Virus record (IMG/VR): IMGVR_UViG_3300023174_000038 | Coordinates: 248,001 to 312,000 of that record | DNA: 64,000 nt | Reading direction: 5' to 3' (one strand) | Shown here: in pieces, positions 11,980 through 39,929 of the stretch | How positions within the stretch are numbered: position 1 is the first letter of the stretch | Layout of the letters: each line of letters opens with the position of its first letter | Position numbers and translations under genes: made by a program | Notes under the pieces: generated by a model | What the model saw: the letters and a program-made list of their open reading frames with translations, nothing else | The model's database searches: none | What the model was told of the DNA's origin: nothing

Positions 11980-12395
11980 TAACTTACCTCTGTTCTACCG
12001 TTACCTAAATCTTTTGTACGAATAACTCTTGCGTCACGGTTGTCAGGATCAGCAACCTGTTGTTCATACATCTCTAATGCTACATTCCGACATACTGTCT
12101 GAAACCACCGATCAACTATGATTACATCAGTATCATCTTCACGTTGCCTATATCCTGCTTTGATAAGATTCAATACAAACTTGTCATTGAAATCTAAATC
12201 AAATGCACCATCATTGATATTCTCAGGATTGATTTCTACTTTAGTAATAGCAATGTAGGGTTCACCTGCTGCCGTTGCTTTTTCTTTTTCTGTAAGCTCA
12301 GGTACCTGAGGCTTCTGTTGTTTAGGTTTAGGCTCTTTCTTAACAACAGGTTCAACCTCTTGCTTTTTAAATAAGTTTTTTAATTTTTCAAACAT
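11979..12395 (-). CDS. Conserved hypothetical protein
   Basis: KEKATAAGEPY, FDLDFNDKF, VDRWF; operon-packed. Confidence 0.75.
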   Translation of the reverse strand: MFEKLKNLFKKQEVEPVVKKEPKPKQQKPQVPELTEKEKATAAGEPYIAITKVEINPENINDGAFDLDFNDKFVLNLIKAGYRQREDDTDVIIVDRWFQTVCRNVALEMYEQQVADPDNRDARVIRTKDLGNGRTEVS

Positions 12396-13447
12396 TTGTA
12401 TCTTTCATATAATTTAAAGCTGGCAAGATTTTTTGCCTTTGATTCACACATCATATCAAAATTATCAATAAATGTCAATGCCCAATCATTAACAGCATCG
12501 TTCCAATAATAATCGCTGTGTGCCCGAAGTTTCTGTTTACTATGTCCTGCTTCTATCAACGCACCATGAGAGGGTAACTGTGATCCGGGATGTCCGACAA
12601 GTACATCCTCACGGCTGACGGAGTAATGTAGAGTAGGACGAACACCGCGCCAACTATCAATAACCTTTTTAACCAGATCATCATTGGGGGAAATATATTC
12701 TCCCTCACGTATCCAGTTATGGTGTATATCAATAACTGTAGGGACGAGGTCAGATAACGATAAGCAGTCAGTAAGTCCATGTGTGTATTCCTCATTTTCT
12801 AGTGTTAGTGTGTTTCGTGCCTCAGGGCTTAATCTATTATAAACATCTCTGATACCTTGAGGACCTTTTCTACCAGAGATATGTACATTTACTTTGAAGT
12901 CTTGAAATGATTTGCCATAGCCCATCCAACGAACCATGTCAGTATGATATTCAAATTCTTCTATACTCTTATTTACTACCTCGTCACGGTCACTCGCTAA
13001 AACTACAAACTGATCGGGGTGAAATGATAGCCGAACATCATTTGCTCTAGCTGTTTCACCAATGGGTGCCATCCAACGTTCTAAGCTATTCTGTACATCG
13101 GTACTATGCCAAAATTCTTTGTAGCCATCCATAGTATAAAAACTAAACATATCACTAGTCAAGCGCACCATACGCAATTCGGGTTCCAATGTGGCAACAC
13201 GCTTAACCAATGCATGTGTATTCATAATGTTACGTTTAGCAACATCCATAATCTTTTCTTCTACTACACTACGATTATTACGCTTTGCCCACGCTTGTGT
13301 AGTGCCACCTGTGTTAAAGCCTTCTGCTGAAACAATCTCACCTTTATGATTGATTTCTGCCCATTTACAAGCAAAGCCGATGCGTTTGATAGATTGATTT
13401 GTCAAAGTAATAGTCCAAAGTGATAAATAATAGATGTAGTGTAGCAT
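12380..13447 (-). CDS. uvsE: UV-damage endonuclease (true start probably near 13400)
   Basis: RIGFACK, RLSFHPDQF, NVHISG, LENEE, DIHH, H-Y-S, AHSDY, ESKAKN. Confidence 0.9.
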   Translation of the reverse strand: MLHYIYYLSLWTITLTNQSIKRIGFACKWAEINHKGEIVSAEGFNTGGTTQAWAKRNNRSVVEEKIMDVAKRNIMNTHALVKRVATLEPELRMVRLTSDMFSFYTMDGYKEFWHSTDVQNSLERWMAPIGETARANDVRLSFHPDQFVVLASDRDEVVNKSIEEFEYHTDMVRWMGYGKSFQDFKVNVHISGRKGPQGIRDVYNRLSPEARNTLTLENEEYTHGLTDCLSLSDLVPTVIDIHHNWIREGEYISPNDDLVKKVIDSWRGVRPTLHYSVSREDVLVGHPGSQLPSHGALIEAGHSKQKLRAHSDYYWNDAVNDWALTFIDNFDMMCESKAKNLASFKLYERYKCLKN

Positions 13448-13484: not shown

Positions 13485-14810
13485 ATGAGATTTACCGAGA
13501 TTATAACTGAAAGCACTGATCTTATACCCTTTGCAGATGGGCATTTGGTTGCCAGTAACCATTTTATAAAAGATAGAAGTATCAAAAGAAATATATCTAT
13601 GGATAATATTTTACAGGTATTACATAAATTGGAAAAAACAAGAAAAGAAGAATTATTTAAAATGCCTTTTGTTAATTTTGTTGTAAAGGCCCCTCATCTT
13701 GGTATAGGTTTATCTAAACAAAAAGATTGGCATGGTGACATAGTATATGTAATTACTACCGCTCACGAAACTTTAAGAGTAGGTGATCTAGAAGATGTAT
13801 TTTATTTAGAAGAAGAAACTGGCACCAGACTCAAGGACCTAGCAAAAATTGCTACAAATATGCCGGATGCTGATTTTTGGTTAATACGTAAAGGTAGTGA
13901 TAAAACTGTTGGAAAACCTGTTAAAGAATTTGATCCTTCACGTATTGGTATTAAAGTTGTAAGAACTGATGTGCTTGACCCAAACTATCTTTATTATGTA
14001 ATGATGCATTTACACAATCAAGGACAATTTGCACGTATAGCAAATGGTACTACTAATTTAGTTAATATTACTGTAAATGATATTGCTAATATTCCATTAG
14101 GTCAACAAGGTATGACCGAAGCAGGTAGTCCGGCACAACAGGCTGCTATTGCTATTAATATGAAAAAACATCATAAAAAACCTAAATCAGAAAGCTTAAA
14201 TGAATTTGTATCTGATGATGGTGATGAAGAAGAATCACTACGCAAATATGCTAAGTTGTGGTATAACGGTGATGATACTACACAACAACAAGTTGAAAAA
14301 ATCTTAGCACGTATGGGTTGGGAAATTGGTGAGATAGAATCAGAAGAAGGCGGTGCATTTGTTGTACAGTCCGGTGATATGAATGGTGATAGTTACATTG
14401 GTTTCACTGTTAATGATTTAACTGAGAGTACGGAAAGGTATACAAAAATGAAAATAGAAGAACTAATTACTGAAGGCGAGAATTGGTCAAAGCACAATAA
14501 TCCAAGAGCAGGTGGTATGAGTAAAAAGTCTGTAAAGAGTTACCGCCGCAGTCATCCTGGTAGTAAGATTCAAACAGCAGTAACAACTAAACCAAGCAAA
14601 CTTAAAAAGGGTAGTAAGGCAGCAAAGCGCCGTGCTAGCTTCTGCGCTAGAATGCGTGGGATGAAGAAACATCGTACAGGTGCTAAAACAGCAAATGATC
14701 CAAACAGTAATATCAATAAAAGTTTACGTAGATGGCATTGTGAAAGCATTGAACAAATGCAAGAGTTAGTAATGTTAGCTGAACAAAAAATTAGGGATCT
14801 TAAGAAATGA
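13485..14810 (+). CDS. Mosaic putative virion-internal polyprotein (HsdS/TRD-like domain plus basic modules)
   Basis: N-term MRFTEIITE; linkers YLEEE, QGMTEA, SLNEF, LTES, LITEG; HsdS-like LDPNYLYY...GTT..NIT...IANIP; C-terminal KRRASFCARM module. Confidence 0.7.
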   Translation: MRFTEIITESTDLIPFADGHLVASNHFIKDRSIKRNISMDNILQVLHKLEKTRKEELFKMPFVNFVVKAPHLGIGLSKQKDWHGDIVYVITTAHETLRVGDLEDVFYLEEETGTRLKDLAKIATNMPDADFWLIRKGSDKTVGKPVKEFDPSRIGIKVVRTDVLDPNYLYYVMMHLHNQGQFARIANGTTNLVNITVNDIANIPLGQQGMTEAGSPAQQAAIAINMKKHHKKPKSESLNEFVSDDGDEEESLRKYAKLWYNGDDTTQQQVEKILARMGWEIGEIESEEGGAFVVQSGDMNGDSYIGFTVNDLTESTERYTKMKIEELITEGENWSKHNNPRAGGMSKKSVKSYRRSHPGSKIQTAVTTKPSKLKKGSKAAKRRASFCARMRGMKKHRTGAKTANDPNSNINKSLRRWHCESIEQMQELVMLAEQKIRDLKK

Positions 14811-16180
14811 ATTTTGTAGAACTATTTGAGGGTACAACACCCAAATTACCGGGTGCTGTAGGTGGCATCAAAGTTATGAGTATGGATCAATTCCTTGCTC
14901 AATCGGGTGATGAACCGGAAGAAAAAATAGATGAAATGTCTTCCGAAGAATTAGATAAAATGTCCCCTGAACAATTAGCACAGTTTACACATAAGGCTAG
15001 AACTGATAAAGCTAAGGTAGATCCCAAAACAATTGATCAGGCTTATGGTAAAAGTATGGATATAATGTTTCCGGATCGTAAAAAATCAGAACATAATAAA
15101 CAACAAGGTGTGGCGGAAGCAACCAAACTTCCAGCACAAACACGTGAACTAAAGGGTCAAGAACTAGATGATTACTTAGATAGAATTCGTAATCGTGAAA
15201 AGGGTAAAACAGACAAATATAAACTACCTTACATCCATCGGTCAAGTGTAGTAAAATACTACAATGAAGAAGGTAAACGCTACGATACAGACCAAATCAA
15301 AACAGCATTAGGCGTTCGTCCAAAGAAACTTCTTAAACAAAATGAGAAGATGAAACATAGTAATGGTGAACTAGAACAATTCTATAACATTGGTTTTGCC
15401 GCATTAGTTGGTATCGCACTAGACGAAGGAACTAACGAACTAATTGTAGTTAATACATGTCCGGGTGCTGGATCATGTAAAGTAGATTGTTTTGCTATGA
15501 AGGGAGGCAAAGTACAATTTGAAGGTCCTTGGTTAAGCGACGGAAGAATTCTTACATTCTTATTGAATGATCCAGATGGTTTCTTTAATCAATTAAGTGC
15601 AGAAATCACAAAAGAAGAAAAACAAGCACAAAAAGGTGGTTACAATTTAACTATTCGTTGGCATGATGCTGGTGATTTCTTTAGCCCAGAATATATGGAT
15701 CTAGCATTTAAGTTGGCGGCTGCCCATCCTGATGTTAAATTCTACGCTTATACAAAGATAGCCGATGCGGCATTAGGCCAAAAGCCAAGTAACTTTATTG
15801 TTAACTGGAGTGAAGGTGCAAGCACTAGCCAAGAGAAACAAGTTAAAGCACAGGATGCTAATTTAGATAAAACTAAAAATAGTCGTATTGTTCCAAGTAA
15901 GTTATTCTATGACTTGTTAAAGAAAGATAAGGATGGTAAGTTAGATAAAACTGCCGACGGTGCATGGCAACCACGTGATGCAGCCGCATTGGAAGAATTG
16001 AAAGATAGATTAGCGGCCGCATATAATCTAAAACGTGATAGTATCATTGATTACAATGAGATGATGGCCACCCCACAAAAGAATAACATTAAGAAATGGA
16101 ATGTTATTATTGCTCCGGGTGAGGGCGATATCAGTGCTAATAGACAAGATGTATTATCAACATTATTATTGAAACACTAA
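14807..16180 (+). CDS. Putative virion-internal protein with GP88-like (radical-SAM-related) domain
   Basis: N-term MNFVELFE; QGVAEA linker; CPGAGSCKVDCFA, IRWHDAGDF, FYAYTK. Confidence 0.7.
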   Translation: MNFVELFEGTTPKLPGAVGGIKVMSMDQFLAQSGDEPEEKIDEMSSEELDKMSPEQLAQFTHKARTDKAKVDPKTIDQAYGKSMDIMFPDRKKSEHNKQQGVAEATKLPAQTRELKGQELDDYLDRIRNREKGKTDKYKLPYIHRSSVVKYYNEEGKRYDTDQIKTALGVRPKKLLKQNEKMKHSNGELEQFYNIGFAALVGIALDEGTNELIVVNTCPGAGSCKVDCFAMKGGKVQFEGPWLSDGRILTFLLNDPDGFFNQLSAEITKEEKQAQKGGYNLTIRWHDAGDFFSPEYMDLAFKLAAAHPDVKFYAYTKIADAALGQKPSNFIVNWSEGASTSQEKQVKAQDANLDKTKNSRIVPSKLFYDLLKKDKDGKLDKTADGAWQPRDAAALEELKDRLAAAYNLKRDSIIDYNEMMATPQKNNIKKWNVIIAPGEGDISANRQDVLSTLLLKH

Positions 16181-16201: not shown

Positions 16202-16942
16202 ATGACAAAACATTGCTTTATTGTGACCAGTGCGGTCAACACAAAATGGGGTATGTATGATAATGAAACTAGGTTCAAACAAACTATTGCTACCTTAGAC
16301 AGCATACATAAATATGCCCCAAATAGTAAAATTATAATTATGGAATGCGCTGCCATTCCATTAACTGAATGGCAAACTCATGTATTGGGTGAGAAATCAA
16401 ATTTGATTGTAGATTGGACTAGTCATCACATGGTTCAACATATTAATGACCAATCAAAAGATGAAAGTATATTAAAAAACTTCACAGAAATCAATTGTTT
16501 CCCTGGAACTATTGAACATTGTTTAGCAACCGATATACTAGATGATGTGGATCGTGTACATAAAATATCAGGTAGATATACATTAAACGAACATTTTAAT
16601 TTAAAACTATACGAAAACAATCAAAAAATTGTTGTTGGTCCAAGACGACCTAGCAGATTACCATTCATATCAGCTTCAGTAGAATATGAATATCCATGTA
16701 GACTGTGGAGTTGGCCTAAGTCTATGTCTAATGATATTGCAACGATGTTCAATGAAATGTTACCATTTCTTGTTAATCATAGAAAAAGAAAATATATAAG
16801 TGAGACCGGAGAAGAACTACAAGCATATATGGATCTTGAACATTTACTATATCATTTCCTTGATCCAAATAAGATTGAATCTGTACCTAAATTGGGTCTT
16901 GATGGAAATCTGTCTTGGACAGGTGAACAAATCAATGATTGA
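16202..16942 (+). CDS. Glycosyltransferase-like hypothetical protein
   Basis: FIVTSAVN...RFKQTIATLDSI, HKISGRY, DLEH motifs; TAAATA box 5 nt upstream. Confidence 0.55.
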   Translation: MTKHCFIVTSAVNTKWGMYDNETRFKQTIATLDSIHKYAPNSKIIIMECAAIPLTEWQTHVLGEKSNLIVDWTSHHMVQHINDQSKDESILKNFTEINCFPGTIEHCLATDILDDVDRVHKISGRYTLNEHFNLKLYENNQKIVVGPRRPSRLPFISASVEYEYPCRLWSWPKSMSNDIATMFNEMLPFLVNHRKRKYISETGEELQAYMDLEHLLYHFLDPNKIESVPKLGLDGNLSWTGEQIND

Positions 16943-17771
16943 TTTTTAACAATTGATCCATAGTATACAAATTACGCATATAGGGTGATACATTAGCTAG
17001 TACTGAACTAGGTAAATCACCCTTTCTTCTTGGACCATATTTTACTTCAAAACTACATTCATTTACTTTTTGAAATAAATCAACAATCTCTTGTACAGTA
17101 TAACCTACTCCGTGACCTAAACATTCAACACTATTGCTAGGCTTTTCAATAGCTTGTATTAATGCATCACATATTTCATTGACATGTACATAATCACGTA
17201 TACATGTACCATCAATAACTGATACATCATAGTCATTACCGTAGATAGTGAACTCACCCGTGTCACGTGCTTTCATTAGATTGTACATTAACCCATCGGG
17301 GTTAGTGGGAGCCACGACGGTACTTCCAATAACATTATAAAATCTAAAGATTGTATATGATGTTGGACGATGGGTAGTACAATATTCTCTAACAACATCT
17401 TCGGCAGCACGTTTACTAATTCCATAAGCACTGGAACAATCTTGTGCGGCACCGGTACTTGCAAAGATAAAGTTTTTAGTCTTTATCTTGTTAATGACAT
17501 TCATTGTACCATTCAAATTGGTAATATAATATTTGATCGGTATCTGTTCACTCTCACCTACACGAACTAATCCCGCTAAATGTATTACTGTATCATATTC
17601 AATATCGCCCGGGATAGCAAATTGTCTATTGATATCACAACGATAAAATTCATTTAAGGGTGCTTGTGGTTCCTCAATATCTAGTCCATGAACTTCATAA
17701 TCATTTTCAAGCATCTTACATAGATGACTACCTATGTATCCCGAGCAACCTGTAATTAAAATCTTTTTCAT
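16932..17771 (-). CDS. NAD-dependent NDP-sugar epimerase/dehydratase (GalE-like)
   Basis: GCSGYIG, HLAG, YGISK, RFYNV, RDYVHV, RRKGD. Confidence 0.9.
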   Translation of the reverse strand: MKKILITGCSGYIGSHLCKMLENDYEVHGLDIEEPQAPLNEFYRCDINRQFAIPGDIEYDTVIHLAGLVRVGESEQIPIKYYITNLNGTMNVINKIKTKNFIFASTGAAQDCSSAYGISKRAAEDVVREYCTTHRPTSYTIFRFYNVIGSTVVAPTNPDGLMYNLMKARDTGEFTIYGNDYDVSVIDGTCIRDYVHVNEICDALIQAIEKPSNSVECLGHGVGYTVQEIVDLFQKVNECSFEVKYGPRRKGDLPSSVLANVSPYMRNLYTMDQLLKINH

Positions 17772-19105
17772 TAAAAACTAAACAGGCTTAATCCTGTTTC
17801 CTCTTCTATTGGTTCAAAACTAGGGTCTTTTGTTAAATATGTATCCTCATCAGTATAGATAACACGGAACTTATGCTTGTTAGTTAATACACTACGTACA
17901 TCATCAATACAAATAATACTACGGTTTAAATCACTAATGAAGTCAACATGTTTAATTGTAGTTTCATTACATATCTTTGCAGTGTTTGTGTTAGATTGTT
18001 TAGGCTTAAAGTTTCTAAAACATTCCATCCATTTATGAAATACATTAGCTTCTTGTTCCTGTGCGTGTTGTAATGCTCCCAAGTTATACCATCTTTCTGC
18101 TTTTTCAAAAATATCATATAACTCTTTTGCTTTACTTGCCATGCCTTTTTTAGTACAAGTATAGAAAAAGCTTTTATTGAAGTTATTAGTCCATCGCTGA
18201 TTCTCTAATACTAATGTAGGCATTTGAATATGTTGTTCATAAAAAGCCATACCATAACTCTCTACTGTGCTAGGATTAAAAGCAATTCTAGCACTTGTAA
18301 TAAAGTCAACTTTCTCTTGACCAATAATACTTACTTTGATTTCGTATGGTACACCAATCTTCTTTAATCTATCTTCAAACTTTTTAGCACCATTAGCACT
18401 AGTCATTACTTTAGCAGGTAATTTTGTTTGTTCAATCAAGTCTAAGAATAGTTCAGGATTCTTACCTTCTTCCCAGCGACCAACAAACAATACACCTTCA
18501 CGTGGTTTATGATGTTCTTCTAATAAACCTTTTTCTGTAATAGGGATAGGTAAGTGATATGAAGATTCATTTAAATGTAGTTGATTGAATTTACTCTGTG
18601 TGCCCACATCAATATTTGTTAAGCTTAATTGGTGACGCATTGCTACATTAGTGTTGAACAAGAAGGGATTCTTAGTGTCTGTAAATATCTGGCTTTCTAA
18701 GTGAGTATATGCAATGATTTGAATCACATCTTCAAGTCCCATAGTACTAGCTACCTGTACAGTTTCATATGTGTTACATATTAATGCATCATATAAATTA
18801 TGTTCTAATGCTTCCACAATAGCTGTACGGAAGTTAGCCATACGTTCATAACAAAAGGTATCTCCATACATAAAGATATTGCTATGGTCAGTATACTTCA
18901 ATGATTCTAATGGAGCTATGATATTTGCAGGAATAGATTTAACAAACTCTGTATCCTGTGGTTCTTTATCTGTAATGATATCAACTTTGATATTATGTTG
19001 GTCCATTAGTTCACAGAAGCTTTTAGCAAATTGTCCTATTCCCCCATGTGGAATGAGAGTTTGATAGCTTACCAAAAAACCAATTCGTTTATCGTATGTT
19101 TTCAT
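17771..19105 (-). CDS. GT-B (GT4-like) glycosyltransferase
   Basis: PHGGIG, LFVGRWEEGKN, PSTVESYGMAFYE. Confidence 0.85.
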   Translation of the reverse strand: MKTYDKRIGFLVSYQTLIPHGGIGQFAKSFCELMDQHNIKVDIITDKEPQDTEFVKSIPANIIAPLESLKYTDHSNIFMYGDTFCYERMANFRTAIVEALEHNLYDALICNTYETVQVASTMGLEDVIQIIAYTHLESQIFTDTKNPFLFNTNVAMRHQLSLTNIDVGTQSKFNQLHLNESSYHLPIPITEKGLLEEHHKPREGVLFVGRWEEGKNPELFLDLIEQTKLPAKVMTSANGAKKFEDRLKKIGVPYEIKVSIIGQEKVDFITSARIAFNPSTVESYGMAFYEQHIQMPTLVLENQRWTNNFNKSFFYTCTKKGMASKAKELYDIFEKAERWYNLGALQHAQEQEANVFHKWMECFRNFKPKQSNTNTAKICNETTIKHVDFISDLNRSIICIDDVRSVLTNKHKFRVIYTDEDTYLTKDPSFEPIEEETGLSLFSF

Positions 19106-19279: not shown

Positions 19280-19510
19280 TTACCTCGTTAGTTTCCATAT
19301 AATATGGGTATTCTTATCGTGCCATCTATGTTCAAAGACAGGATCACCGGGACCAGTAATGATTCTAGTTAATCGGTATCCATACTTTAACCAAATACGA
19401 TTACCGGATATATCACATCTCTGCGGTAACCAAGCAAACTTGTATTCGGTGCCGATCATTCTTTCATAGAAATGATTGTATGGCTGTGTTTGTGGCATTA
19501 AGTTCCCCAT
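19280..19510 (-). CDS. Hypothetical protein
   Basis: FAWLPQRC..SG..IWL motif. Confidence 0.65.
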   Translation of the reverse strand: MGNLMPQTQPYNHFYERMIGTEYKFAWLPQRCDISGNRIWLKYGYRLTRIITGPGDPVFEHRWHDKNTHIIWKLTR

Positions 19511-20346
19511 TCGTTTTTGAAAAGATCACATTGAAGTCTGGCACTATATCTCCACCCTCTTTCCATAGCAAGGTTGGCAACTGTTTTAGTATTAAGTTGA
19601 TATTTGTCATTTGTTCCGCCCACAGGCATTAAATATACAGGACCTCTGAATCCAGCAATACGATATTCTTTAACTGCCTTTTCTGCCTCTAGTACATCAT
19701 CTTCTGTTGCTACTACAAACTTAAGATACACAAAGCCTATACTTTCATATTGACGAATGATACTAGGACAGATTGCTTCACTCCACTTCTCACCGCTGAT
19801 ACTTAATTTAGGACTGACACTAAATGTTAGAGCATTCTTTTCTCTGTTAATCTTCCATTGCTGTAGATAGATTGATAGGTCTTGACTAAGTTCTTGCGTA
19901 CCGTTAGTTTCAAATGTAATCTCTTTCAAACTTTTCATTTTTTCGTTTGAAAGTAATTCAGGATAAGACCTTTGCCAACCAAGTAGAGGCTCCCCACCAG
20001 TGATAACAAGGTGTTCGTCCATCCAGCGATTGTGAGGAAGCATAGCCATAATGTCGTCAACAATATCATCGGTGGGGCGAACAGGACTAAGATGCTTAAA
20101 CCTAGGATCCCATGAAGCATAGCTATCACACCCTGTACTGACCAGCGGTAATTTTTTATAATCATCATAATAGTGAACCCTTGACGCAATATCTTCTACT
20201 TCTTTACTAGTTTGACCTTTAGGCATGCCGAAGCCTGCACATGTAAAGTTACAACCAAATGTTCTTAGGAAAATACTTGGTACACCGATATATCGGCCCT
20301 CTCCTTGTATACTATAGAATAGTTCTGAAATTTTTATGTTACTCAT
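19498..20346 (-). CDS. queE: 7-carboxy-7-deazaguanine synthase (radical SAM)
   Basis: ELFYSIQGEG, RTFGCNFTC...GCDS, ITGGEP, FETNG, SVSPK. Confidence 0.93.
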   Translation of the reverse strand: MSNIKISELFYSIQGEGRYIGVPSIFLRTFGCNFTCAGFGMPKGQTSKEVEDIASRVHYYDDYKKLPLVSTGCDSYASWDPRFKHLSPVRPTDDIVDDIMAMLPHNRWMDEHLVITGGEPLLGWQRSYPELLSNEKMKSLKEITFETNGTQELSQDLSIYLQQWKINREKNALTFSVSPKLSISGEKWSEAICPSIIRQYESIGFVYLKFVVATEDDVLEAEKAVKEYRIAGFRGPVYLMPVGGTNDKYQLNTKTVANLAMERGWRYSARLQCDLFKNEWGT

Positions 20347-20350
20347 ATTT

Positions 20351-20542
20351 TTACCAATTATGTATTGTGTTTGCTATAATGAAAAAACATGTTATCACAT
20401 GTAGCACCACCCAGAAAGTTTTTAGGAACAATGCGATTCTTGCTTCACCCAATGTAAGAATAGGTACATCAGGACGATCATCATCAGTATTACCCATTAG
20501 ATGACCGGTTGCTCTTGCCCAGATTTTTTCTAAACTATTCAT
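20351..20542 (-). CDS. Small membrane protein
   Basis: C-terminal TM helix; WARATG motif. Confidence 0.65.
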   Translation of the reverse strand: MNSLEKIWARATGHLMGNTDDDRPDVPILTLGEARIALFLKTFWVVLHVITCFFIIANTIHNW

Positions 20543-20958
20543 TAAGCTACCTCGTCTTTATTGTTGCTAGGATATTTTGCACTAGTATATCTAATAACTA
20601 ATACGCTTATTGTTACAATAAATGTAGAAACAGCAACCGCTAACATTTCAACAATATTAATTGGCTGATGACTCATTATATCTACCATATGCCGTGTCAG
20701 TGCTGTTATTGCAATGTATAACAAGAACCTGACAGGCATATGATTGGTCTTGAAATAAATGCCTACCATTGCACCCATTTCTAAATAGATAAACATCAAC
20801 AACAAGTCACCAACAGTTGCGTGATGTTTCTGAAACAGTTCAACAAAAGTACATCCGGCTGCCCATACTGTTGCGGCACCGATACCAAACAATGCTAAAC
20901 GATGAAATATATCTACTAAGGTATGTCCTACCTTATCTACCATTTCTGTTTTTAACAT
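20542..20958 (-). CDS. psiE: Phosphate-starvation-inducible PsiE-family membrane protein
   Basis: 4 TM; DLLLMFIYLE...YFKTNHMPVRFLLYIAITALTR. Confidence 0.88.
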   Translation of the reverse strand: MLKTEMVDKVGHTLVDIFHRLALFGIGAATVWAAGCTFVELFQKHHATVGDLLLMFIYLEMGAMVGIYFKTNHMPVRFLLYIAITALTRHMVDIMSHQPINIVEMLAVAVSTFIVTISVLVIRYTSAKYPSNNKDEVA

Positions 20959-21440
20959 TATTCAAACTCCCTATCTTCTCTATGACCACCTCTACCTGCC
21001 ATATTACTATCAGTCTCACGTACCTCTACCCTACAACACCATACACGCTTTGCTTCTTCACTACCACAATTAGGTAAAAAGATTGTGTTAATGTATTCGT
21101 ATAAGAAGTCAGATATTCCCTCACAACCAGTACGCTCTACTTCTGTAATCTTAGCTAGTTTCAAACGACCTAGTTCTAATAGATGTTCACGCATAGGGTC
21201 ATCCTGTGCGACTAATAATGTATGGTCAAACCATTCTTCTAGTTTATCTTTAAGTGGTCGTAATCCCCCAAAGTCAGTTACCCAGTTACGTGCATCTAGT
21301 GTATCAGCTTCAAATTCAAAGTGAAAACTCATAGCATAGCCATGAATTAGATTACAATGACTGTCGGCACGCCATTGACGATATGCGACAGGACCTATTT
21401 GTCTGTATGTTTTTGTTGAAAAGAATTTTTTGTTTGCCAT
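20958..21440 (-). CDS. queD: 6-carboxytetrahydropterin synthase
   Basis: SHCNLIHGY, WVTDFG, FDHT, E..N C-terminal motif; next to queE/folE. Confidence 0.88.
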   Translation of the reverse strand: MANKKFFSTKTYRQIGPVAYRQWRADSHCNLIHGYAMSFHFEFEADTLDARNWVTDFGGLRPLKDKLEEWFDHTLLVAQDDPMREHLLELGRLKLAKITEVERTGCEGISDFLYEYINTIFLPNCGSEEAKRVWCCRVEVRETDSNMAGRGGHREDREFE

Positions 21441-21516: not shown

Positions 21517-21990
21517 TTATTTATTAAGAGTGTTAATGATTTGGGCATCAGCTACCCGTTTACGTAAACTTGAACTACTAAAACTGTGGTCACGACCATT
21601 GAACACAATTTCAATACCTCGTTCCCCACCTTCATATCTTCCAGTAAACTCTTTATCAGCATATTCAACACCCAAAATGCGAACATCTAGGGGTAGAATC
21701 AGTAATAGGTCAATAAGGTCCTGTTCAGTTTGATATACAACAACTTCATCTACATAACGGCAAGCCGCAAGCTGAATCTGTCGCTCTACAATACTTTGAA
21801 TAGGTTTGTTCTTAGTATCAGGACGATCAATGGTTGGATCTGTTTGTAATCCACAAATCAAGTAATCACAGTGGTTCTTTGCCTCACTTAACATAGCAAC
21901 ATGTCCTGCATGTAGCAAATCAAATGTACTAAAGGTAATACCAATCTTTTTACCTTGTGCTTTTAATTCTTTGATATGATTGAAAATCAT
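21517..21990 (-). CDS. Cytidylyltransferase (glycerol-3-phosphate CTase/TagD-like)
   Basis: FDLLHAGH, ER, YVDEV, SSSSLR; start likely MIFNH at 21990. Confidence 0.88.
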   Translation of the reverse strand: MIFNHIKELKAQGKKIGITFSTFDLLHAGHVAMLSEAKNHCDYLICGLQTDPTIDRPDTKNKPIQSIVERQIQLAACRYVDEVVVYQTEQDLIDLLLILPLDVRILGVEYADKEFTGRYEGGERGIEIVFNGRDHSFSSSSLRKRVADAQIINTLNK

Positions 21991-22223
21991 TTTGAAAGAG
22001 TTCTCCACATTTTAACTTGGTCATGCTCTTTTAAGAATTCATCCTCACCCACAAATGTAGGACTATCTGCCATAATCTCATCTAACAACCACTTGATACG
22101 ATGTAAATCTTTTTTGATTTCAAACTGATTGAAACCATCATTGTAATTGCTATGTAATTCTACACCACTCATATAGATTTGATGATGTACACTGTTGTAA
22201 TCCATTTGTTTACGCAAGCCCAT
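21987..22223 (-). CDS. Hypothetical protein
   Basis: Operon-packed ORF. Confidence 0.7.
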   Translation of the reverse strand: MGLRKQMDYNSVHHQIYMSGVELHSNYNDGFNQFEIKKDLHRIKWLLDEIMADSPTFVGEDEFLKEHDQVKMWRTLSK

Positions 22224-22909
22224 TATTTACATCCCTTGTTAGCAATCTGTAAGAACTCTTGTCGTGCCGCTGGATCTGTTTTAAATCCACCACCTAAACG
22301 ACAAGTAACTGTACTAGAGCCTGTATCTTCTACACCACGTGACTTAACGCAATAGTGTTGTGCATCAATCATAACTGCAACATCTTCTGTATCAAGGATG
22401 AACTGTAAGGTGTGAAATATTTGTTCAGTTAATCTTTCCTGTATTTGCGGACGTTTACTGAAATATTCTACGATACGGTTGATCTTACTAAGACCTAAAA
22501 CTTTTTGTTTAGGGACATAAGCTACAGTAGCCAATCCATCAATCACTACACCGTGATGTTCGCAGTTAGATTGAACATTAACATTACGCTCTACAACCAT
22601 TTCGTTGTATTGCATCTTGTTGTCAACTGTTGTGCATTTCGGAAAGTTTTCATCTTTAAGACCGAAATATATTTCATTAATATACATCTTAGCCATTCTA
22701 TTTGGGGTCTCACGAAGGCTATCATCATTTAAATCTACACCCACTGTTTTCCAAATAGTAGTAAATGCATCCTCTAAAATGTCAATTTTCTTTTTATTTT
22801 CTACTGCAAGAGCAGATTCGTTGATGGGAGTTTCTACTCCTACTTTAGTAAGATACTCTCTTACTTTTTTACCCAATATTGGGTCACATTTGGTTTTGTC
22901 AAAACTCAT
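22223..22909 (-). CDS. folE: GTP cyclohydrolase I
   Basis: ETPNR, CEHH, GLSKINR, RPQIQERLT, HYCVKSRG. Confidence 0.95.
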   Translation of the reverse strand: MSFDKTKCDPILGKKVREYLTKVGVETPINESALAVENKKKIDILEDAFTTIWKTVGVDLNDDSLRETPNRMAKMYINEIYFGLKDENFPKCTTVDNKMQYNEMVVERNVNVQSNCEHHGVVIDGLATVAYVPKQKVLGLSKINRIVEYFSKRPQIQERLTEQIFHTLQFILDTEDVAVMIDAQHYCVKSRGVEDTGSSTVTCRLGGGFKTDPAARQEFLQIANKGCK

Positions 22910-22924
22910 ATTGATTCTCCTTAC

Positions 22925-23767
22925 TCAAATTTGTTTATGATTTAAAAATGTAGGTTTAGTTAAATTCCAAACTAAACCATACTGATACTTCTTATCAGGA
23001 TTAATGGAAATGTCATTATCATTTCTATACTTTCCTTTTAACTCTCCTTCAAAAATTATTCTCTTTCCTGAAGGTTTGTATAATCTTCCGTAGCTTATAG
23101 TGTACTCTAATTTTATTAGTTCTTCAATTTTATCGGGTGAAAGAAATTTCTCTTCACCGTTTACTATACACCATTTCTTACCCTTAACTGCGGACTTACC
23201 ATACATACCATTAACTTCTCCATGTCTGGCCATTTGAGTCTTTGATCCAACTCTAAATTTTATTTCGCTAGTATTGATAATATTAGCAATACTAAAAATT
23301 TGGTGGTACAATGGCAATTGATGATACTTTATAATAGAATGCTCACCTAATATGATATTATATATAGTTATAGTATCTTTTCTAGGATTATTGAATGTTT
23401 TCTTTTTGTGTGATGCCACTGCCCTAGACGATGACCAATTGCTAGTTCGTATATTAGTTAAGCCGTATTTTTGCTTCAACTCCAATATCAATTTTAACTC
23501 TATGCATAGAGCCTCATCTTCTGTAAGACCTTCACTGATTTTTACAATCTTAGGGTTCAATCCTAAACTTTGTATTAACCTAATAGTGTTTAACTTATGA
23601 CTATTTTTATGTTTTCTAGTCGGTCTAGCATCTTTTAAGTGGTCAAAAAGTCTACTACCAATGCCCTTACCTATATAAAAAGGCTTCGCTGAAAAAGAAA
23701 AAACACTTGAATTATAACTTCCCTCTTCCATGGGATTTAAATATGCGTATACATAATACTGTGACAT
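22925..23767 (-). CDS. Free-standing GIY-YIG homing endonuclease
   Basis: YYVYAY...PFYIGKG..R...H...E...LTN; NGMYGK NUMOD-like motif; AT-rich insert. Confidence 0.82.
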   Translation of the reverse strand: MSQYYVYAYLNPMEEGSYNSSVFSFSAKPFYIGKGIGSRLFDHLKDARPTRKHKNSHKLNTIRLIQSLGLNPKIVKISEGLTEDEALCIELKLILELKQKYGLTNIRTSNWSSSRAVASHKKKTFNNPRKDTITIYNIILGEHSIIKYHQLPLYHQIFSIANIINTSEIKFRVGSKTQMARHGEVNGMYGKSAVKGKKWCIVNGEEKFLSPDKIEELIKLEYTISYGRLYKPSGKRIIFEGELKGKYRNDNDISINPDKKYQYGLVWNLTKPTFLNHKQI

Positions 23768-24058: not shown

Positions 24059-25237
24059 TTATGAGTATTTTGTTTCTCTTGTGTATTTACGATAATCGGT
24101 AGTCATACGTAAATATTGTTCTCCGTTGCCTTCCATGATATCACAGATACGGTCAATTGTCCCATCATTGTACTTACTAATACGACCTTGATAGTTATGC
24201 GGTGCCATCAACAAATTTTGCAATTTAGACATAGCATCATCAATACTCCAAGGAATATATAGTCGGGTATTGTCATTTGCAAACGTTTCTGGAAAACTAC
24301 GATATGCTGGATATAATACATTACAACCCAACGTATCTGCTTCACTAACTGTATTACTTACCCAGTCTTGTAAAGCACAATTAAACAGTACTCTAGTATC
24401 ATTTAATAATTGATAGTAATCATTCTTTTCCAAATCTTCATAGATAACTAGTTTACCTTGACTTTGCAGTTTTCTAGTACGTTCCATATAACTTTCGTTA
24501 TTGCTTTTTAGTTTACTACCACTGAATACGCAGAACTCTACTTTAGTATTAGACCTAGAATGAAATGCTTCAATCAAATCCATATAGAAGTCAGGTTGTT
24601 TCTCTTGATCCCAACGTGCTGAAAATGCTACACGCATCTTACGTTGGTTGAAGGGTTTTAACGGTCCTGCAATACGTTCACGTACTTCATCTTTACCAAA
24701 TGCTAATCCTGAAATATTATAGATAGGAGCCTTCCAACCCGCAATCTTCATATGCATTACCATTTCTTCATTAGTAGCTAGTACACCGTCAACGAATGAA
24801 TCAACCATCTTTTCATAGTGACCCATAAATTCACTCATGCCCCATACATGTACGAAATCATCCGGATCAATTGACTGAGCAAGACAACGGACAAATATAC
24901 GAGGACGCAGATTAGCAGGAACTTGCTTAAGTATATAAGGAAGGCTTTCAATGCCCGGCTGAAACATATCTTCAAAATAGATAATATCTTCATCACTACA
25001 CTCACCTTGTTTCATCATCTTTACTAGATTCATTAATTGACTCATACCGTAGTATGTACGTCCATGTGCATCTAATACTTGTCCTGTTACAATAGCTTGG
25101 TCATTACTTAATGTATCACCGGGAACGATAACATAGTTAATGCCTCTACGTTTAAAGACACGTTCATTCCACTCTTGTAACTGTAGTGTATACCTGGCCT
25201 TGTACGGCTCAAGTCCCATGTAGTACAGCTTTCTCAT
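24059..25237 (-). CDS. GT-B glycosyltransferase (putative DNA glycosyltransferase)
   Basis: FSARWDQEKQP, ALQDWVSNTVSEA, YPAYRSFPE; start likely MRKLYY at 25237. Confidence 0.82.
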   Translation of the reverse strand: MRKLYYMGLEPYKARYTLQLQEWNERVFKRRGINYVIVPGDTLSNDQAIVTGQVLDAHGRTYYGMSQLMNLVKMMKQGECSDEDIIYFEDMFQPGIESLPYILKQVPANLRPRIFVRCLAQSIDPDDFVHVWGMSEFMGHYEKMVDSFVDGVLATNEEMVMHMKIAGWKAPIYNISGLAFGKDEVRERIAGPLKPFNQRKMRVAFSARWDQEKQPDFYMDLIEAFHSRSNTKVEFCVFSGSKLKSNNESYMERTRKLQSQGKLVIYEDLEKNDYYQLLNDTRVLFNCALQDWVSNTVSEADTLGCNVLYPAYRSFPETFANDNTRLYIPWSIDDAMSKLQNLLMAPHNYQGRISKYNDGTIDRICDIMEGNGEQYLRMTTDYRKYTRETKYS

Positions 25238-25434
25238 GGACGTGCGTCTTCCTGCCACTGATCCTTAGCCCACTTGCCAGTTACTGCTTTAGTAAATTGA
25301 CGATATGCAAAGCTACGCATATCATATAGGGTTGATTCATCAAACTTGTATCCATAATCTTGACAGAACATTAGATAGTTTTCTAGGTCCTCAAAGATTT
25401 GTTGAACACGTGGGTTAGATTGTTGTTTTGCCAT
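25234..25434 (-). CDS. Hypothetical protein
   Basis: IFEDLENYLMFC..YGY.FDE; AAGGA RBS. Confidence 0.72.
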   Translation of the reverse strand: MAKQQSNPRVQQIFEDLENYLMFCQDYGYKFDESTLYDMRSFAYRQFTKAVTGKWAKDQWQEDARP

Positions 25435-38862: not shown

Positions 38863-39489
38863 TTATCCTACTACTGTACGATTCTTTACTTTACTAATTT
38901 CTACACTGAGTGGTGTATTAGTTGTTTTTGCTCTAAATATCTTATCAGTCTCACGTACACCTGGCTTAAGTTCAGATGCTACAATTAAGAATCTTGCTCT
39001 ATTCTTTCTCATGCCAATAAACTCACCTACTAATACTTGGTAATTAGGATAGTTAGGTGTTAAATCTATTTTAGGATTTTCTTGTTCATTGATGCTTTCT
39101 GACACACCTTGTGCAATTGCTTCACGTGCCTGACGTTCATTTTCTTGTTTGAATCGTTGCATGGCTTGACTATCATTTATTTGTCCACGATCCAGTGCTT
39201 GCCAAATTGGCAAATCAAATGTGAGATATTTTTTTTGTACTGCTTGAGCATAACTAACTTCATTGCCACGACCTTGCCAATCAGGTTTATGCCCCCAAAC
39301 AACAGATACAGATTGACCATTTGGGAAGTTGATACGCATACGCTCTCCATAAAATACATATGTACTACCTTGCCATGTAAAAGCAAGATCGCCATTAACT
39401 GTTTTACCCATAGACCAGCCATGCTTTTTTAACAGTGAATCAACTGCGGCTTGATTATCATTCTCAATAATAAACTCTGTTGCTCTCAT
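38863..39489 (-). CDS. Mosaic putative virion-internal protein
   Basis: N-term MRATEFIIE; internal QGVSESINE linker. Confidence 0.68.
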   Translation of the reverse strand: MRATEFIIENDNQAAVDSLLKKHGWSMGKTVNGDLAFTWQGSTYVFYGERMRINFPNGQSVSVVWGHKPDWQGRGNEVSYAQAVQKKYLTFDLPIWQALDRGQINDSQAMQRFKQENERQAREAIAQGVSESINEQENPKIDLTPNYPNYQVLVGEFIGMRKNRARFLIVASELKPGVRETDKIFRAKTTNTPLSVEISKVKNRTVVG

Positions 39490-39929
39490 TACTCACGTTC
39501 TCTTTTTAATGTTGAACGGATAAACCATGCTTTCTTACCGTATAGGTCTTGCAGTTCAGCCATGTAGTTAGCAATACCCTGTTGACGTTCATTTGTTGCT
39601 TCATCAAACATAGCAACAACAAGTTGACCTAATGTTTCACAATCTTGTAGTAACTCAATAAACATGAGTTCAGCTCTTGGAACTTTAGTTTGGTCTTGAA
39701 TGATACTTAATTCAGCATAACGTGTTAGACTGCCAGGAGTATAGTGACCTAATATTCTGATATATTCAGCTACAGGATCAATAGTAGCATTTACATCTTC
39801 ATACAATGTATTAAAGAATTCGTGATATTGTGGGAAGTTACTTCCCTCCACATTCCAATGAAAGTTTTGTGATTTGATAGCAAAGCTTTGTGTACTAGCT
39901 AATAGTACTTTTAAATTATCTGATAACAT
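39489..39929 (-). CDS. dps: Dps/ferritin-like protein
   Basis: FHWNVEGSNF..YHEFF...D.VAE.IR. Confidence 0.9.
   Translation of the reverse strand: MLSDNLKVLLASTQSFAIKSQNFHWNVEGSNFPQYHEFFNTLYEDVNATIDPVAEYIRILGHYTPGSLTRYAELSIIQDQTKVPRAELMFIELLQDCETLGQLVVAMFDEATNERQQGIANYMAELQDLYGKKAWFIRSTLKRERE

Follow-up and report, generated by a model that had tools for sequence, protein, structure and literature searches.

The window analysed here, a stretch of 64,000 nucleotides (positions 248,001 to 312,000 of IMG/VR record IMGVR_UViG_3300023174_000038), belongs to the genome of a T4-like jumbo phage of 348,701 bp and 36% G+C that is 100% complete by CheckV. It contains a gene of 441 codons, readable without an alternative genetic code, whose product is composed of several modules. 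The order UvdE gene, 441-aa gene and GP88-domain gene is syntenic in related contigs, where the middle gene encodes 298, 310 or 441 aa, and with this variation in length at a syntenic position the locus behaves as a cassette. Its features, in window coordinates, are:

13485..14810, + strand: the 441-aa multi-module open reading frame (P0001), a single copy in the genome
13485..13511, + strand: leader M-R-F-T-E-I-I-T-E (9 aa), a candidate capsid-targeting propeptide that ends in I-x-E and resembles the T4 capsid-targeting sequence (CTS)
13512..13814, + strand: N module (aa 10-110), missing from most orthologues and poorly modelled
13806..13814, + strand: junction motif L108-E-E110, a candidate protease site in a disordered linker
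13827..14099, + strand: M module (aa 115-205, R115-L205), a minimal domain with the fold of a target-recognition domain (TRD), the feature originally flagged
14112..14120, + strand: junction motif M210-T-E212, a candidate protease site behind the TRD-like module
14217..14420, + strand: small folded alpha/beta sub-domain (aa 245-312) of the acidic L region, as seen in the full-length model
14448..14474, + strand: internal second leader-like motif M-K-I-E-E-L-I-T-E, directly preceding the basic C module
14505..14735, + strand: DUF6321 module (aa 341-417), recognised by Pfam
14807..16180, + strand: GP88-domain gene, whose start overlaps the stop of the 441-aa gene; syntenic neighbour in relatives

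Because of this overlap, the GP88 gene may be co-translated with the 441-aa gene. The 246-aa open reading frame that follows it (16202-16942, + strand) matched no family, and the gene found after GP88 in a related contig (224 aa) carries a weak Peptidase_U49 (Lit-like) label and faint M48 labels. Other genes in the window encode a UvdE UV-endonuclease, a nucleotide-sugar epimerase, glycosyltransferase-like proteins, a LEM-3-like GIY-YIG nuclease and a ferritin-like protein (jointly at 12380-13447, 16932-19105, 22925-23767, 24059-25258 and 39489-39929, all on the - strand). A further cluster comprises a radical-SAM gene (QueE-like, sub-threshold; 19498-20346, - strand), PTPS/QueD (20958-21440, - strand) and GTP cyclohydrolase I (22223-22909, - strand), with PsiE (20542-20958) and a CTP_transf_like gene (21517-22008) in between. 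The trio looks like a pathway to a 7-deazaguanine precursor and thereby hints at modification of the phage DNA.

Within the 441-aa protein, the M module is near neutral (pI 8.3), about 11 kDa in size and set between the linkers Y107-L-E-E-E111 and Q208-G-M-T-E-A213, while the C module (aa 331-441) is very basic (pI 11.1). Apart from a sub-threshold stretch resembling T4 RegB endoribonuclease (aa 20-55 of the N module, E 0.0012-0.0085), Pfam recognised only DUF6321 in the whole protein and had no match in aa 100-230 at a threshold as loose as E <= 10; PHROGs likewise gave nothing for the N and L modules beyond the RegB-like match. In other phages the N module is fused, after the same leader, to GH19 chitinase proteins. 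The sub-domain at aa 245-312 is modelled with confidence (block-mean pLDDT up to 92), and a structure search with it returned no significant known fold (best Z 4.9, then NOT-box and secretin N0). No paralogue of any module was found in the phage's own genome. The second leader-like motif, a short way ahead of the DUF6321 module, opens with an in-frame internal methionine; this looks as if once-separate leader-bearing genes had been fused. DUF6321 is also present in the cyanomyoviruses P-TIM68 (L010:1481-2764, 427 aa) and S-PRM1 (L011:650-2764, 704 aa), at the extreme C-terminus of proteins that lack a CTS-like leader; in P-TIM68 the gene is flanked by a tail-fibre-like gene and the large terminase.

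The initial annotation had described a segment of about 92 aa, bounded by YLEEE and QGMTEA, as a stand-alone domain resembling the TRD of HsdS. The segment lies where it was placed and is an autonomous module, and the assignment of its fold is upheld by two AlphaFold models, an ESM Atlas model and 17 PADLOC profiles. An AlphaFold2 domain model, built from an alignment of 36 module sequences, has a confident core (block-mean pLDDT 84-93 over residues 11-80). With this model, the top Foldseek match in the PDB was the Mycoplasma genitalium S subunit 1ydx (E 9.9e-4, probability 1.0), followed by the BsaXI S subunit, a Vibrio vulnificus type I methyltransferase (MTase), the PacII S subunit and 1yf2. 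In an exhaustive VIA-align search of 48,161 chains, ranks 1-15 were all TRD-bearing (Z 9.6 to 3.2; best 1yf2 at Z 9.6 and 7eew at Z 9.3), and unrelated rows began at Z 2.8. These 15 ranks included type I S subunits, type IIB, IIG and IIL enzymes, CamA, M.BseCI, M.TaqI, BREX PglX and Esub1. A second AlphaFold model, of the full-length protein and from an independent alignment, matched 7eew (Z 8.2, rmsd 2.7 Å over 87 residues) and 1yf2 (Z 8.0, rmsd 2.7 Å over 88 residues), both fits being tighter than with the domain model.

Queries of the ESM Atlas with the AlphaFold model and with the Atlas's own model yielded, in this order, small hypothetical proteins of viruses, DUF6943 and Methylase_S clusters (TM 0.71-0.81), and the matches in BFVD were giant-virus methyltransferases with TRDs. 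At the sequence level, all 17 PADLOC matches to the segment were 'Specificity_I' type I specificity-subunit profiles (best E 1.8e-5), and the same profile was matched by 40 of 137 distant family members (best E 4e-8). A sequence search of the PDB with the protein and two family profiles gave nothing significant, 1yf2 appearing at E 0.47 on the expected motif. The resemblance of the M module to HsdS is far beyond chance. A chance likeness or a pseudogene remnant was considered and rejected because the family is large, its dN/dS low and its fold confidently predicted.

Despite its TRD fold, the M module is no HsdS. In restriction-modification (R-M) and BREX methyltransferases, TRDs are the parts known to read DNA. 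The module shares the fold of HsdS TRDs (PF01420; 1yf2, 1ydx, 3okg, 7eew and the PacII and BsaXI S subunits, Z 8-9.6) but amounts to about 60% of one TRD, with some 88-92 aa aligned against the 147-residue span of the 1yf2 TRD. Profile homology is weak but consistent over the C-terminal half of the TRD, and positions 1-88 of the PADLOC profile match only about 33 residues of the module, so that some 55-60 residues of a canonical TRD are missing. Instead of two TRDs joined by conserved-region coiled-coil helices, there is a single truncated copy that ends in a disordered linker where the HsdS conserved-region helix would begin, with no long helix after it. It does not reach the gathering score of Pfam Methylase_S (PF01420), which has no match anywhere in the genome.

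Nor does the module keep the company of an HsdS. The initial annotation had noted that hsdM and hsdR are absent from the window; this holds for the whole 348,701-bp genome, in which a profile search also found no N6_Mtase, HSDR_N or Dam. No DNA methyltransferase domain was detected by Pfam in any of the 137 relatives scanned, either fused or otherwise linked to the module, and none occurred among the neighbours of two stand-alone family genes. A partner acting in trans was also considered and is unlikely, given that the sole candidate, a match of the N6_N4_Mtase type, is below threshold and about 250 kb distant, and that Dam and N6_Mtase are absent. Co-folding of the module with Escherichia coli EcoKI HsdM scored 0.00, which counts neither way. 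The best explanation is that the M module originated as the TRD of a type I or type IIG R-M enzyme and was reduced to a core of about 92 aa with loss of the coiled coil and of the MTase partner.

The family to which the module belongs is large, mostly viral and unannotated in Pfam. A profile search of 1.84 billion cluster representatives retrieved 513 clusters (50% identity) at E <= 1e-3, and 340 at E <= 1e-10, in which the domain stands alone (92-105 aa) or is N-terminal, C-terminal or internal in proteins of up to 2,722 aa. A word-index search with aa 1-230 found 81 other metagenomic proteins, and the module (about 95 aa) recurs in some 66 metagenomic relatives at up to 94% identity while the flanking sequence changes. 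In these close relatives it usually occupies aa 12-112, straight behind a leader of 9-11 aa, and is internal or C-terminal in some; the sequence behind it diverges into differing modules. When four arbitrary segments of the protein were compared by BLAST, the flagged segment was the most conserved, and its dN/dS of about 0.07-0.08 against two orthologues indicates strong purifying selection. Unlike fast-evolving specificity domains, it is about 90% conserved across variants, suggesting one conserved ligand. Its invariant residues include a D-A-D-F-W stretch as well as R135, G143, G155, Y171, G180 and G188. Searched by tblastn in 50,697 phage records, the module had no match, and neither had 20 kb of the window in a Megablast search.

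Precomputed Pfam labels in the close relatives include GH19 chitinase, CwlJ, phage lysozyme, GNAT, nucleotidyltransferase, sigma-70 region 4 and DUF6321. Among the 137 distant members, ART-PolyVal was found in 8, GNAT families in 4 and NUDIX in 3, and LPD22, PARP, ParB_N, sigma70_r4, GH19, a deaminase and a cytidylyltransferase once or twice each. Nine of the 137 matched the PADLOC profile mad5 of the MADS defence system (best E 4.7e-8). The nearest named family is the uncharacterised DUF6943 (PF22105; Atlas feature score 0.89, TM 0.79-0.86), which matches some family members below threshold (E 7.6e-4 to 0.15, 12.7-20.1 bits against a cut-off of 27 bits) but not the window's own module, even at E <= 10. 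DUF6943 clusters are mostly bacterial, whereas the M-module family is mostly viral. In the literature that could be searched, DUF6943 and DUF6321 were not mentioned.

The leader provides a possible route for such modules into the capsid. In T4, the capsid-targeting sequence is M-K-T-Y-Q-E-F-I-A-E, in which residues 8 and 10 (I-x-E) govern processing; these 10 aa alone suffice for packaging, and the protease gp21 cleaves after L/I-x-E. The 9-aa leader of the 441-aa protein corresponds to a CTS-like propeptide of about 10 aa with an L/I-x-E ending. It or close variants of it (M-R-A-x-E-F-I-x-E, M-R-I-K-E-I-I-A-E, M-K-I-N-E-I-L-T-E) occur in 54 of 82 close relatives, whichever module follows, and in only 4 of 328 open reading frames of at least 100 aa in the phage's own genome. 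The form M-R-A-x-E-F-[IV]-x-E starts three further open reading frames of the genome (208, 125 and 131 aa), at window 38863-39489 (- strand) and at C1:16385-16762(-) and 16759-17154(-) (L012:886-1263 and 1260-1655); these have no Pfam or PHROG match and are candidate internal-head proteins.

Among the genes of the phage are one for a prohead protease of the T4 gp21 type (Peptidase_S77, 97 bits), an adjoining one for a scaffold-like (gp22) protein with unusually many Phi-x-E motifs (7.9 per 100 aa), and one for a capsid protein of the gp23 type (329 bits), in which L-A-E followed by S stands in the N-terminal propeptide region. In the 441-aa protein, Phi-x-E motifs end at E9, E110, E212, E240, E314 and E326/E330, the last pair forming part of the second leader-like motif, immediately ahead of the basic DUF6321 module. 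With pLDDT below 50 at residues 93-110 and 209-221, the E110 and E212 motifs fall in linkers between folded modules, and the motif ending at E240 starts just past another segment of pLDDT below 50. Nearly all relatives tallied have [MVIL]-x-E at the junction behind the TRD-like module, after which their sequences diverge. In 14-aa windows near the module of distant representatives, Phi-x-E occurs in 48% upstream and 58% downstream, against a background of 22%. At P3, several junction motifs have M or V in place of L or I. The T4 late-promoter motif TATAAATA was not found upstream of the 441-aa gene and is rarer than expected in the window as a whole (3 occurrences against 12.8 in shuffles). 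Many distant members, including most of the stand-alone ones of 92-97 aa, have no leader, and packaging is therefore not a property of the TRD-like domain itself.

Two kinds of known proteins are similar in design. Like the internal proteins of T4 (IPI, IPII, IPIII) and like Alt, which are CTS-led, processed by gp21 and ejected, the 441-aa protein has a short propeptide ending in I-x-E, homologues of gp21, gp22 and gp23 in the same genome and small predicted fragments, one of them very basic. It differs from them in showing no sequence similarity past the leader and in that its modules are concatenated with internal sites rather than encoded as one protein per gene, and its packaging is a prediction. 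Polyvalent proteins combine disparate domains in one polypeptide, and their injection together with the DNA of phages or plasmids has been proposed (Iyer et al. 2017, PMC5512222). The four modules here are a similar assembly of unrelated domains, and in relatives the M module is joined to ART-PolyVal, LPD22, GNAT, NUDIX, ParB_N and lysozyme-type domains. Hallmark polyvalent domains (such as ART-PolyVal, LPDs and MPTase) are absent from the 441-aa protein and present in relatives that share the module, and processing here would be by the head protease instead of an embedded MPTase. In a text search of PMC5512222, neither a TRD nor an HsdS or S-subunit domain came up.

We tentatively favour, as an almost even prospect, the reading of the gene product as a processed and ejected polyprotein with a mini-TRD that recognises DNA or an enzyme. 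The product would be a T4-style internal-head 'polyprotein' of this T4-like jumbo phage. Its nine-residue CTS-like leader would direct it into the prohead core, where the gp21-type protease would cut after the glutamate of Phi-x-E in flexible linkers and free four small modules: N, the TRD-like M, the acidic module and the very basic DUF6321 module. These would remain in the capsid and be ejected with the DNA; the signals around the M module suggest, short of proof, that it is cut out within the capsid and injected into the host. Its likeliest activity there would be to recognise DNA or a DNA-handling enzyme at the onset of infection, in host takeover or counter-defence. The initial annotation had spoken of an injected polyprotein; the product does consist of several modules, and packaging and injection are made plausible by the leader, the Phi-x-E motifs, the gp21, gp22 and gp23 homologues and the polyvalent domains of relatives. 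From these features we infer packaging, cleavage and ejection. The packaged-polyprotein reading is favoured by the position of the Phi-x-E motifs in linkers, by fusion partners typical of injected polyvalent proteins and by the swapping of modules at the locus between relatives. It is weakened by the missing late promoter, the leaderless distant members, the M or V at P3 in several junctions and the leaderless cyanophage DUF6321 proteins. As to the ligand, the homology to TRDs suggests that the module recognises DNA or a DNA-modifying enzyme. Binding to DNA itself may be expected from the ancestry of the fold, an expectation weakened by the 55-60 missing TRD residues and the near-neutral charge of the module.

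Conservation of the leader could instead reflect a recombination anchor or a translation signal, and the 441-aa protein may then be an ordinary cytoplasmic multi-domain protein that is never packaged, in which the TRD-like module targets a fused enzyme (ART, GNAT, NUDIX or a hydrolase) in cis to DNA-bound targets and the junction motifs, like the leader, are recombination or translation features. This is a rather unlikely reading, though one with several observations on its side: leaderless stand-alone and C-terminal versions are common, two stand-alone genes are surrounded by series of small hypothetical genes and have no annotated structural gene in their vicinity, the upstream late-promoter motif is absent, and the locus sits among DNA-repair and DNA-modification genes outside the head cluster. 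The T4 IP genes, however, are likewise found away from the head cluster, the leader is similar to the T4 CTS down to its processing residues, Phi-x-E is enriched at the junctions, and a peptidoglycan hydrolase is a sensible fusion partner for a protein that is ejected. Alternatively, the M module may be no effector at all and serve as a packaging or structural adaptor, the constant part that binds scaffold, portal or packaged DNA in the head and carries variable cargo. Such a role would be consistent with the close relatives, where the module is the most conserved part and usually follows the leader directly while the downstream cargo varies, and with the strong purifying selection on it. It is nonetheless very unlikely, as the 10-aa CTS of T4 is by itself enough for packaging, the N module separates leader and M module in the 441-aa protein, and in distant members the domain often stands alone or at the C-terminus, with no leader.

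A more specific proposal, which follows the initial annotation's idea of an HsdS mimic, is that the free TRD acts as an HsdS decoy, binding HsdM and poisoning the assembly or function of host type I R-M. The true TRD homology of the M module, the lack of a cognate hsdM and hsdR in the phage, the precedent of T4 IPI* as a small ejected anti-restriction protein and the presence of relatives in polyvalent proteins, whose known modules include the anti-restriction ArdA and DarA, all speak for it; a literature search on phage HsdS decoys returned nothing relevant. Yet the module stops where the HsdS conserved-region helix would begin, and in M2S1 structures the conserved-region helix bundle is the main HsdS-HsdM interface. 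Host M2S1 and R2M2S1 complexes are moreover already assembled when the DNA enters, so that a decoy acting on new assembly would come too late, and the conservation of about 90%, which points to one conserved ligand, also argues against it. The half S-subunit Esub1 of Streptococcus pyogenes (PDB 8vsq) is a relevant comparison: host-encoded, 196 aa long and a homodimer that keeps its dimerisation helices, it shares with the M module a TRD-like head outside canonical R-M (structural match Z 6.2-7.8) and is proposed to bind DNA, but even with these helices its binding to HsdM could not be shown. A poisoning of type I R-M assembly is not supported; we consider the decoy improbable, and an anti-restriction role of the module a possibility and not a finding. 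Any such role in common with Ocr and ArdA is hypothetical; those proteins are highly acidic DNA mimics of unrelated fold, unlike the M module with its pI of 8.3 and its TRD fold. Similarly improbable, in our view, is a broader form of subunit mimicry, in which mini-TRDs would constitute an ejected or early class of counter-defence proteins: delivered ready-made from the capsid as one product of a protease-processed polyprotein, a free TRD core would disable the gamma-class MTase defences of the host (type I, type IIG, BREX PglX) by docking on their TRD-binding surface or on their DNA-engaged state.

In summary, the TRD fold, polyvalent proteins and the T4 CTS are already known. What is new is a large, unannotated and mostly viral family of minimal TRDs without a methyltransferase, its recurrence in proteins of the polyvalent and the putative internal-head kind, and the joining of leader-bearing modules end to end in a single, putatively cleavable cassette, whose product we tentatively read as a processed and ejected polyprotein. 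A large, strongly conserved and mostly viral TRD family without a methyltransferase would represent a new deployment of the TRD fold. If the module is an anti-defence factor, subunit mimicry would join DNA mimicry, DNA modification and enzyme inhibitors among the strategies of anti-restriction. The locus offers a testable case of T4-style capsid targeting and processing being used to deliver swappable small effectors in uncultured jumbo phages.
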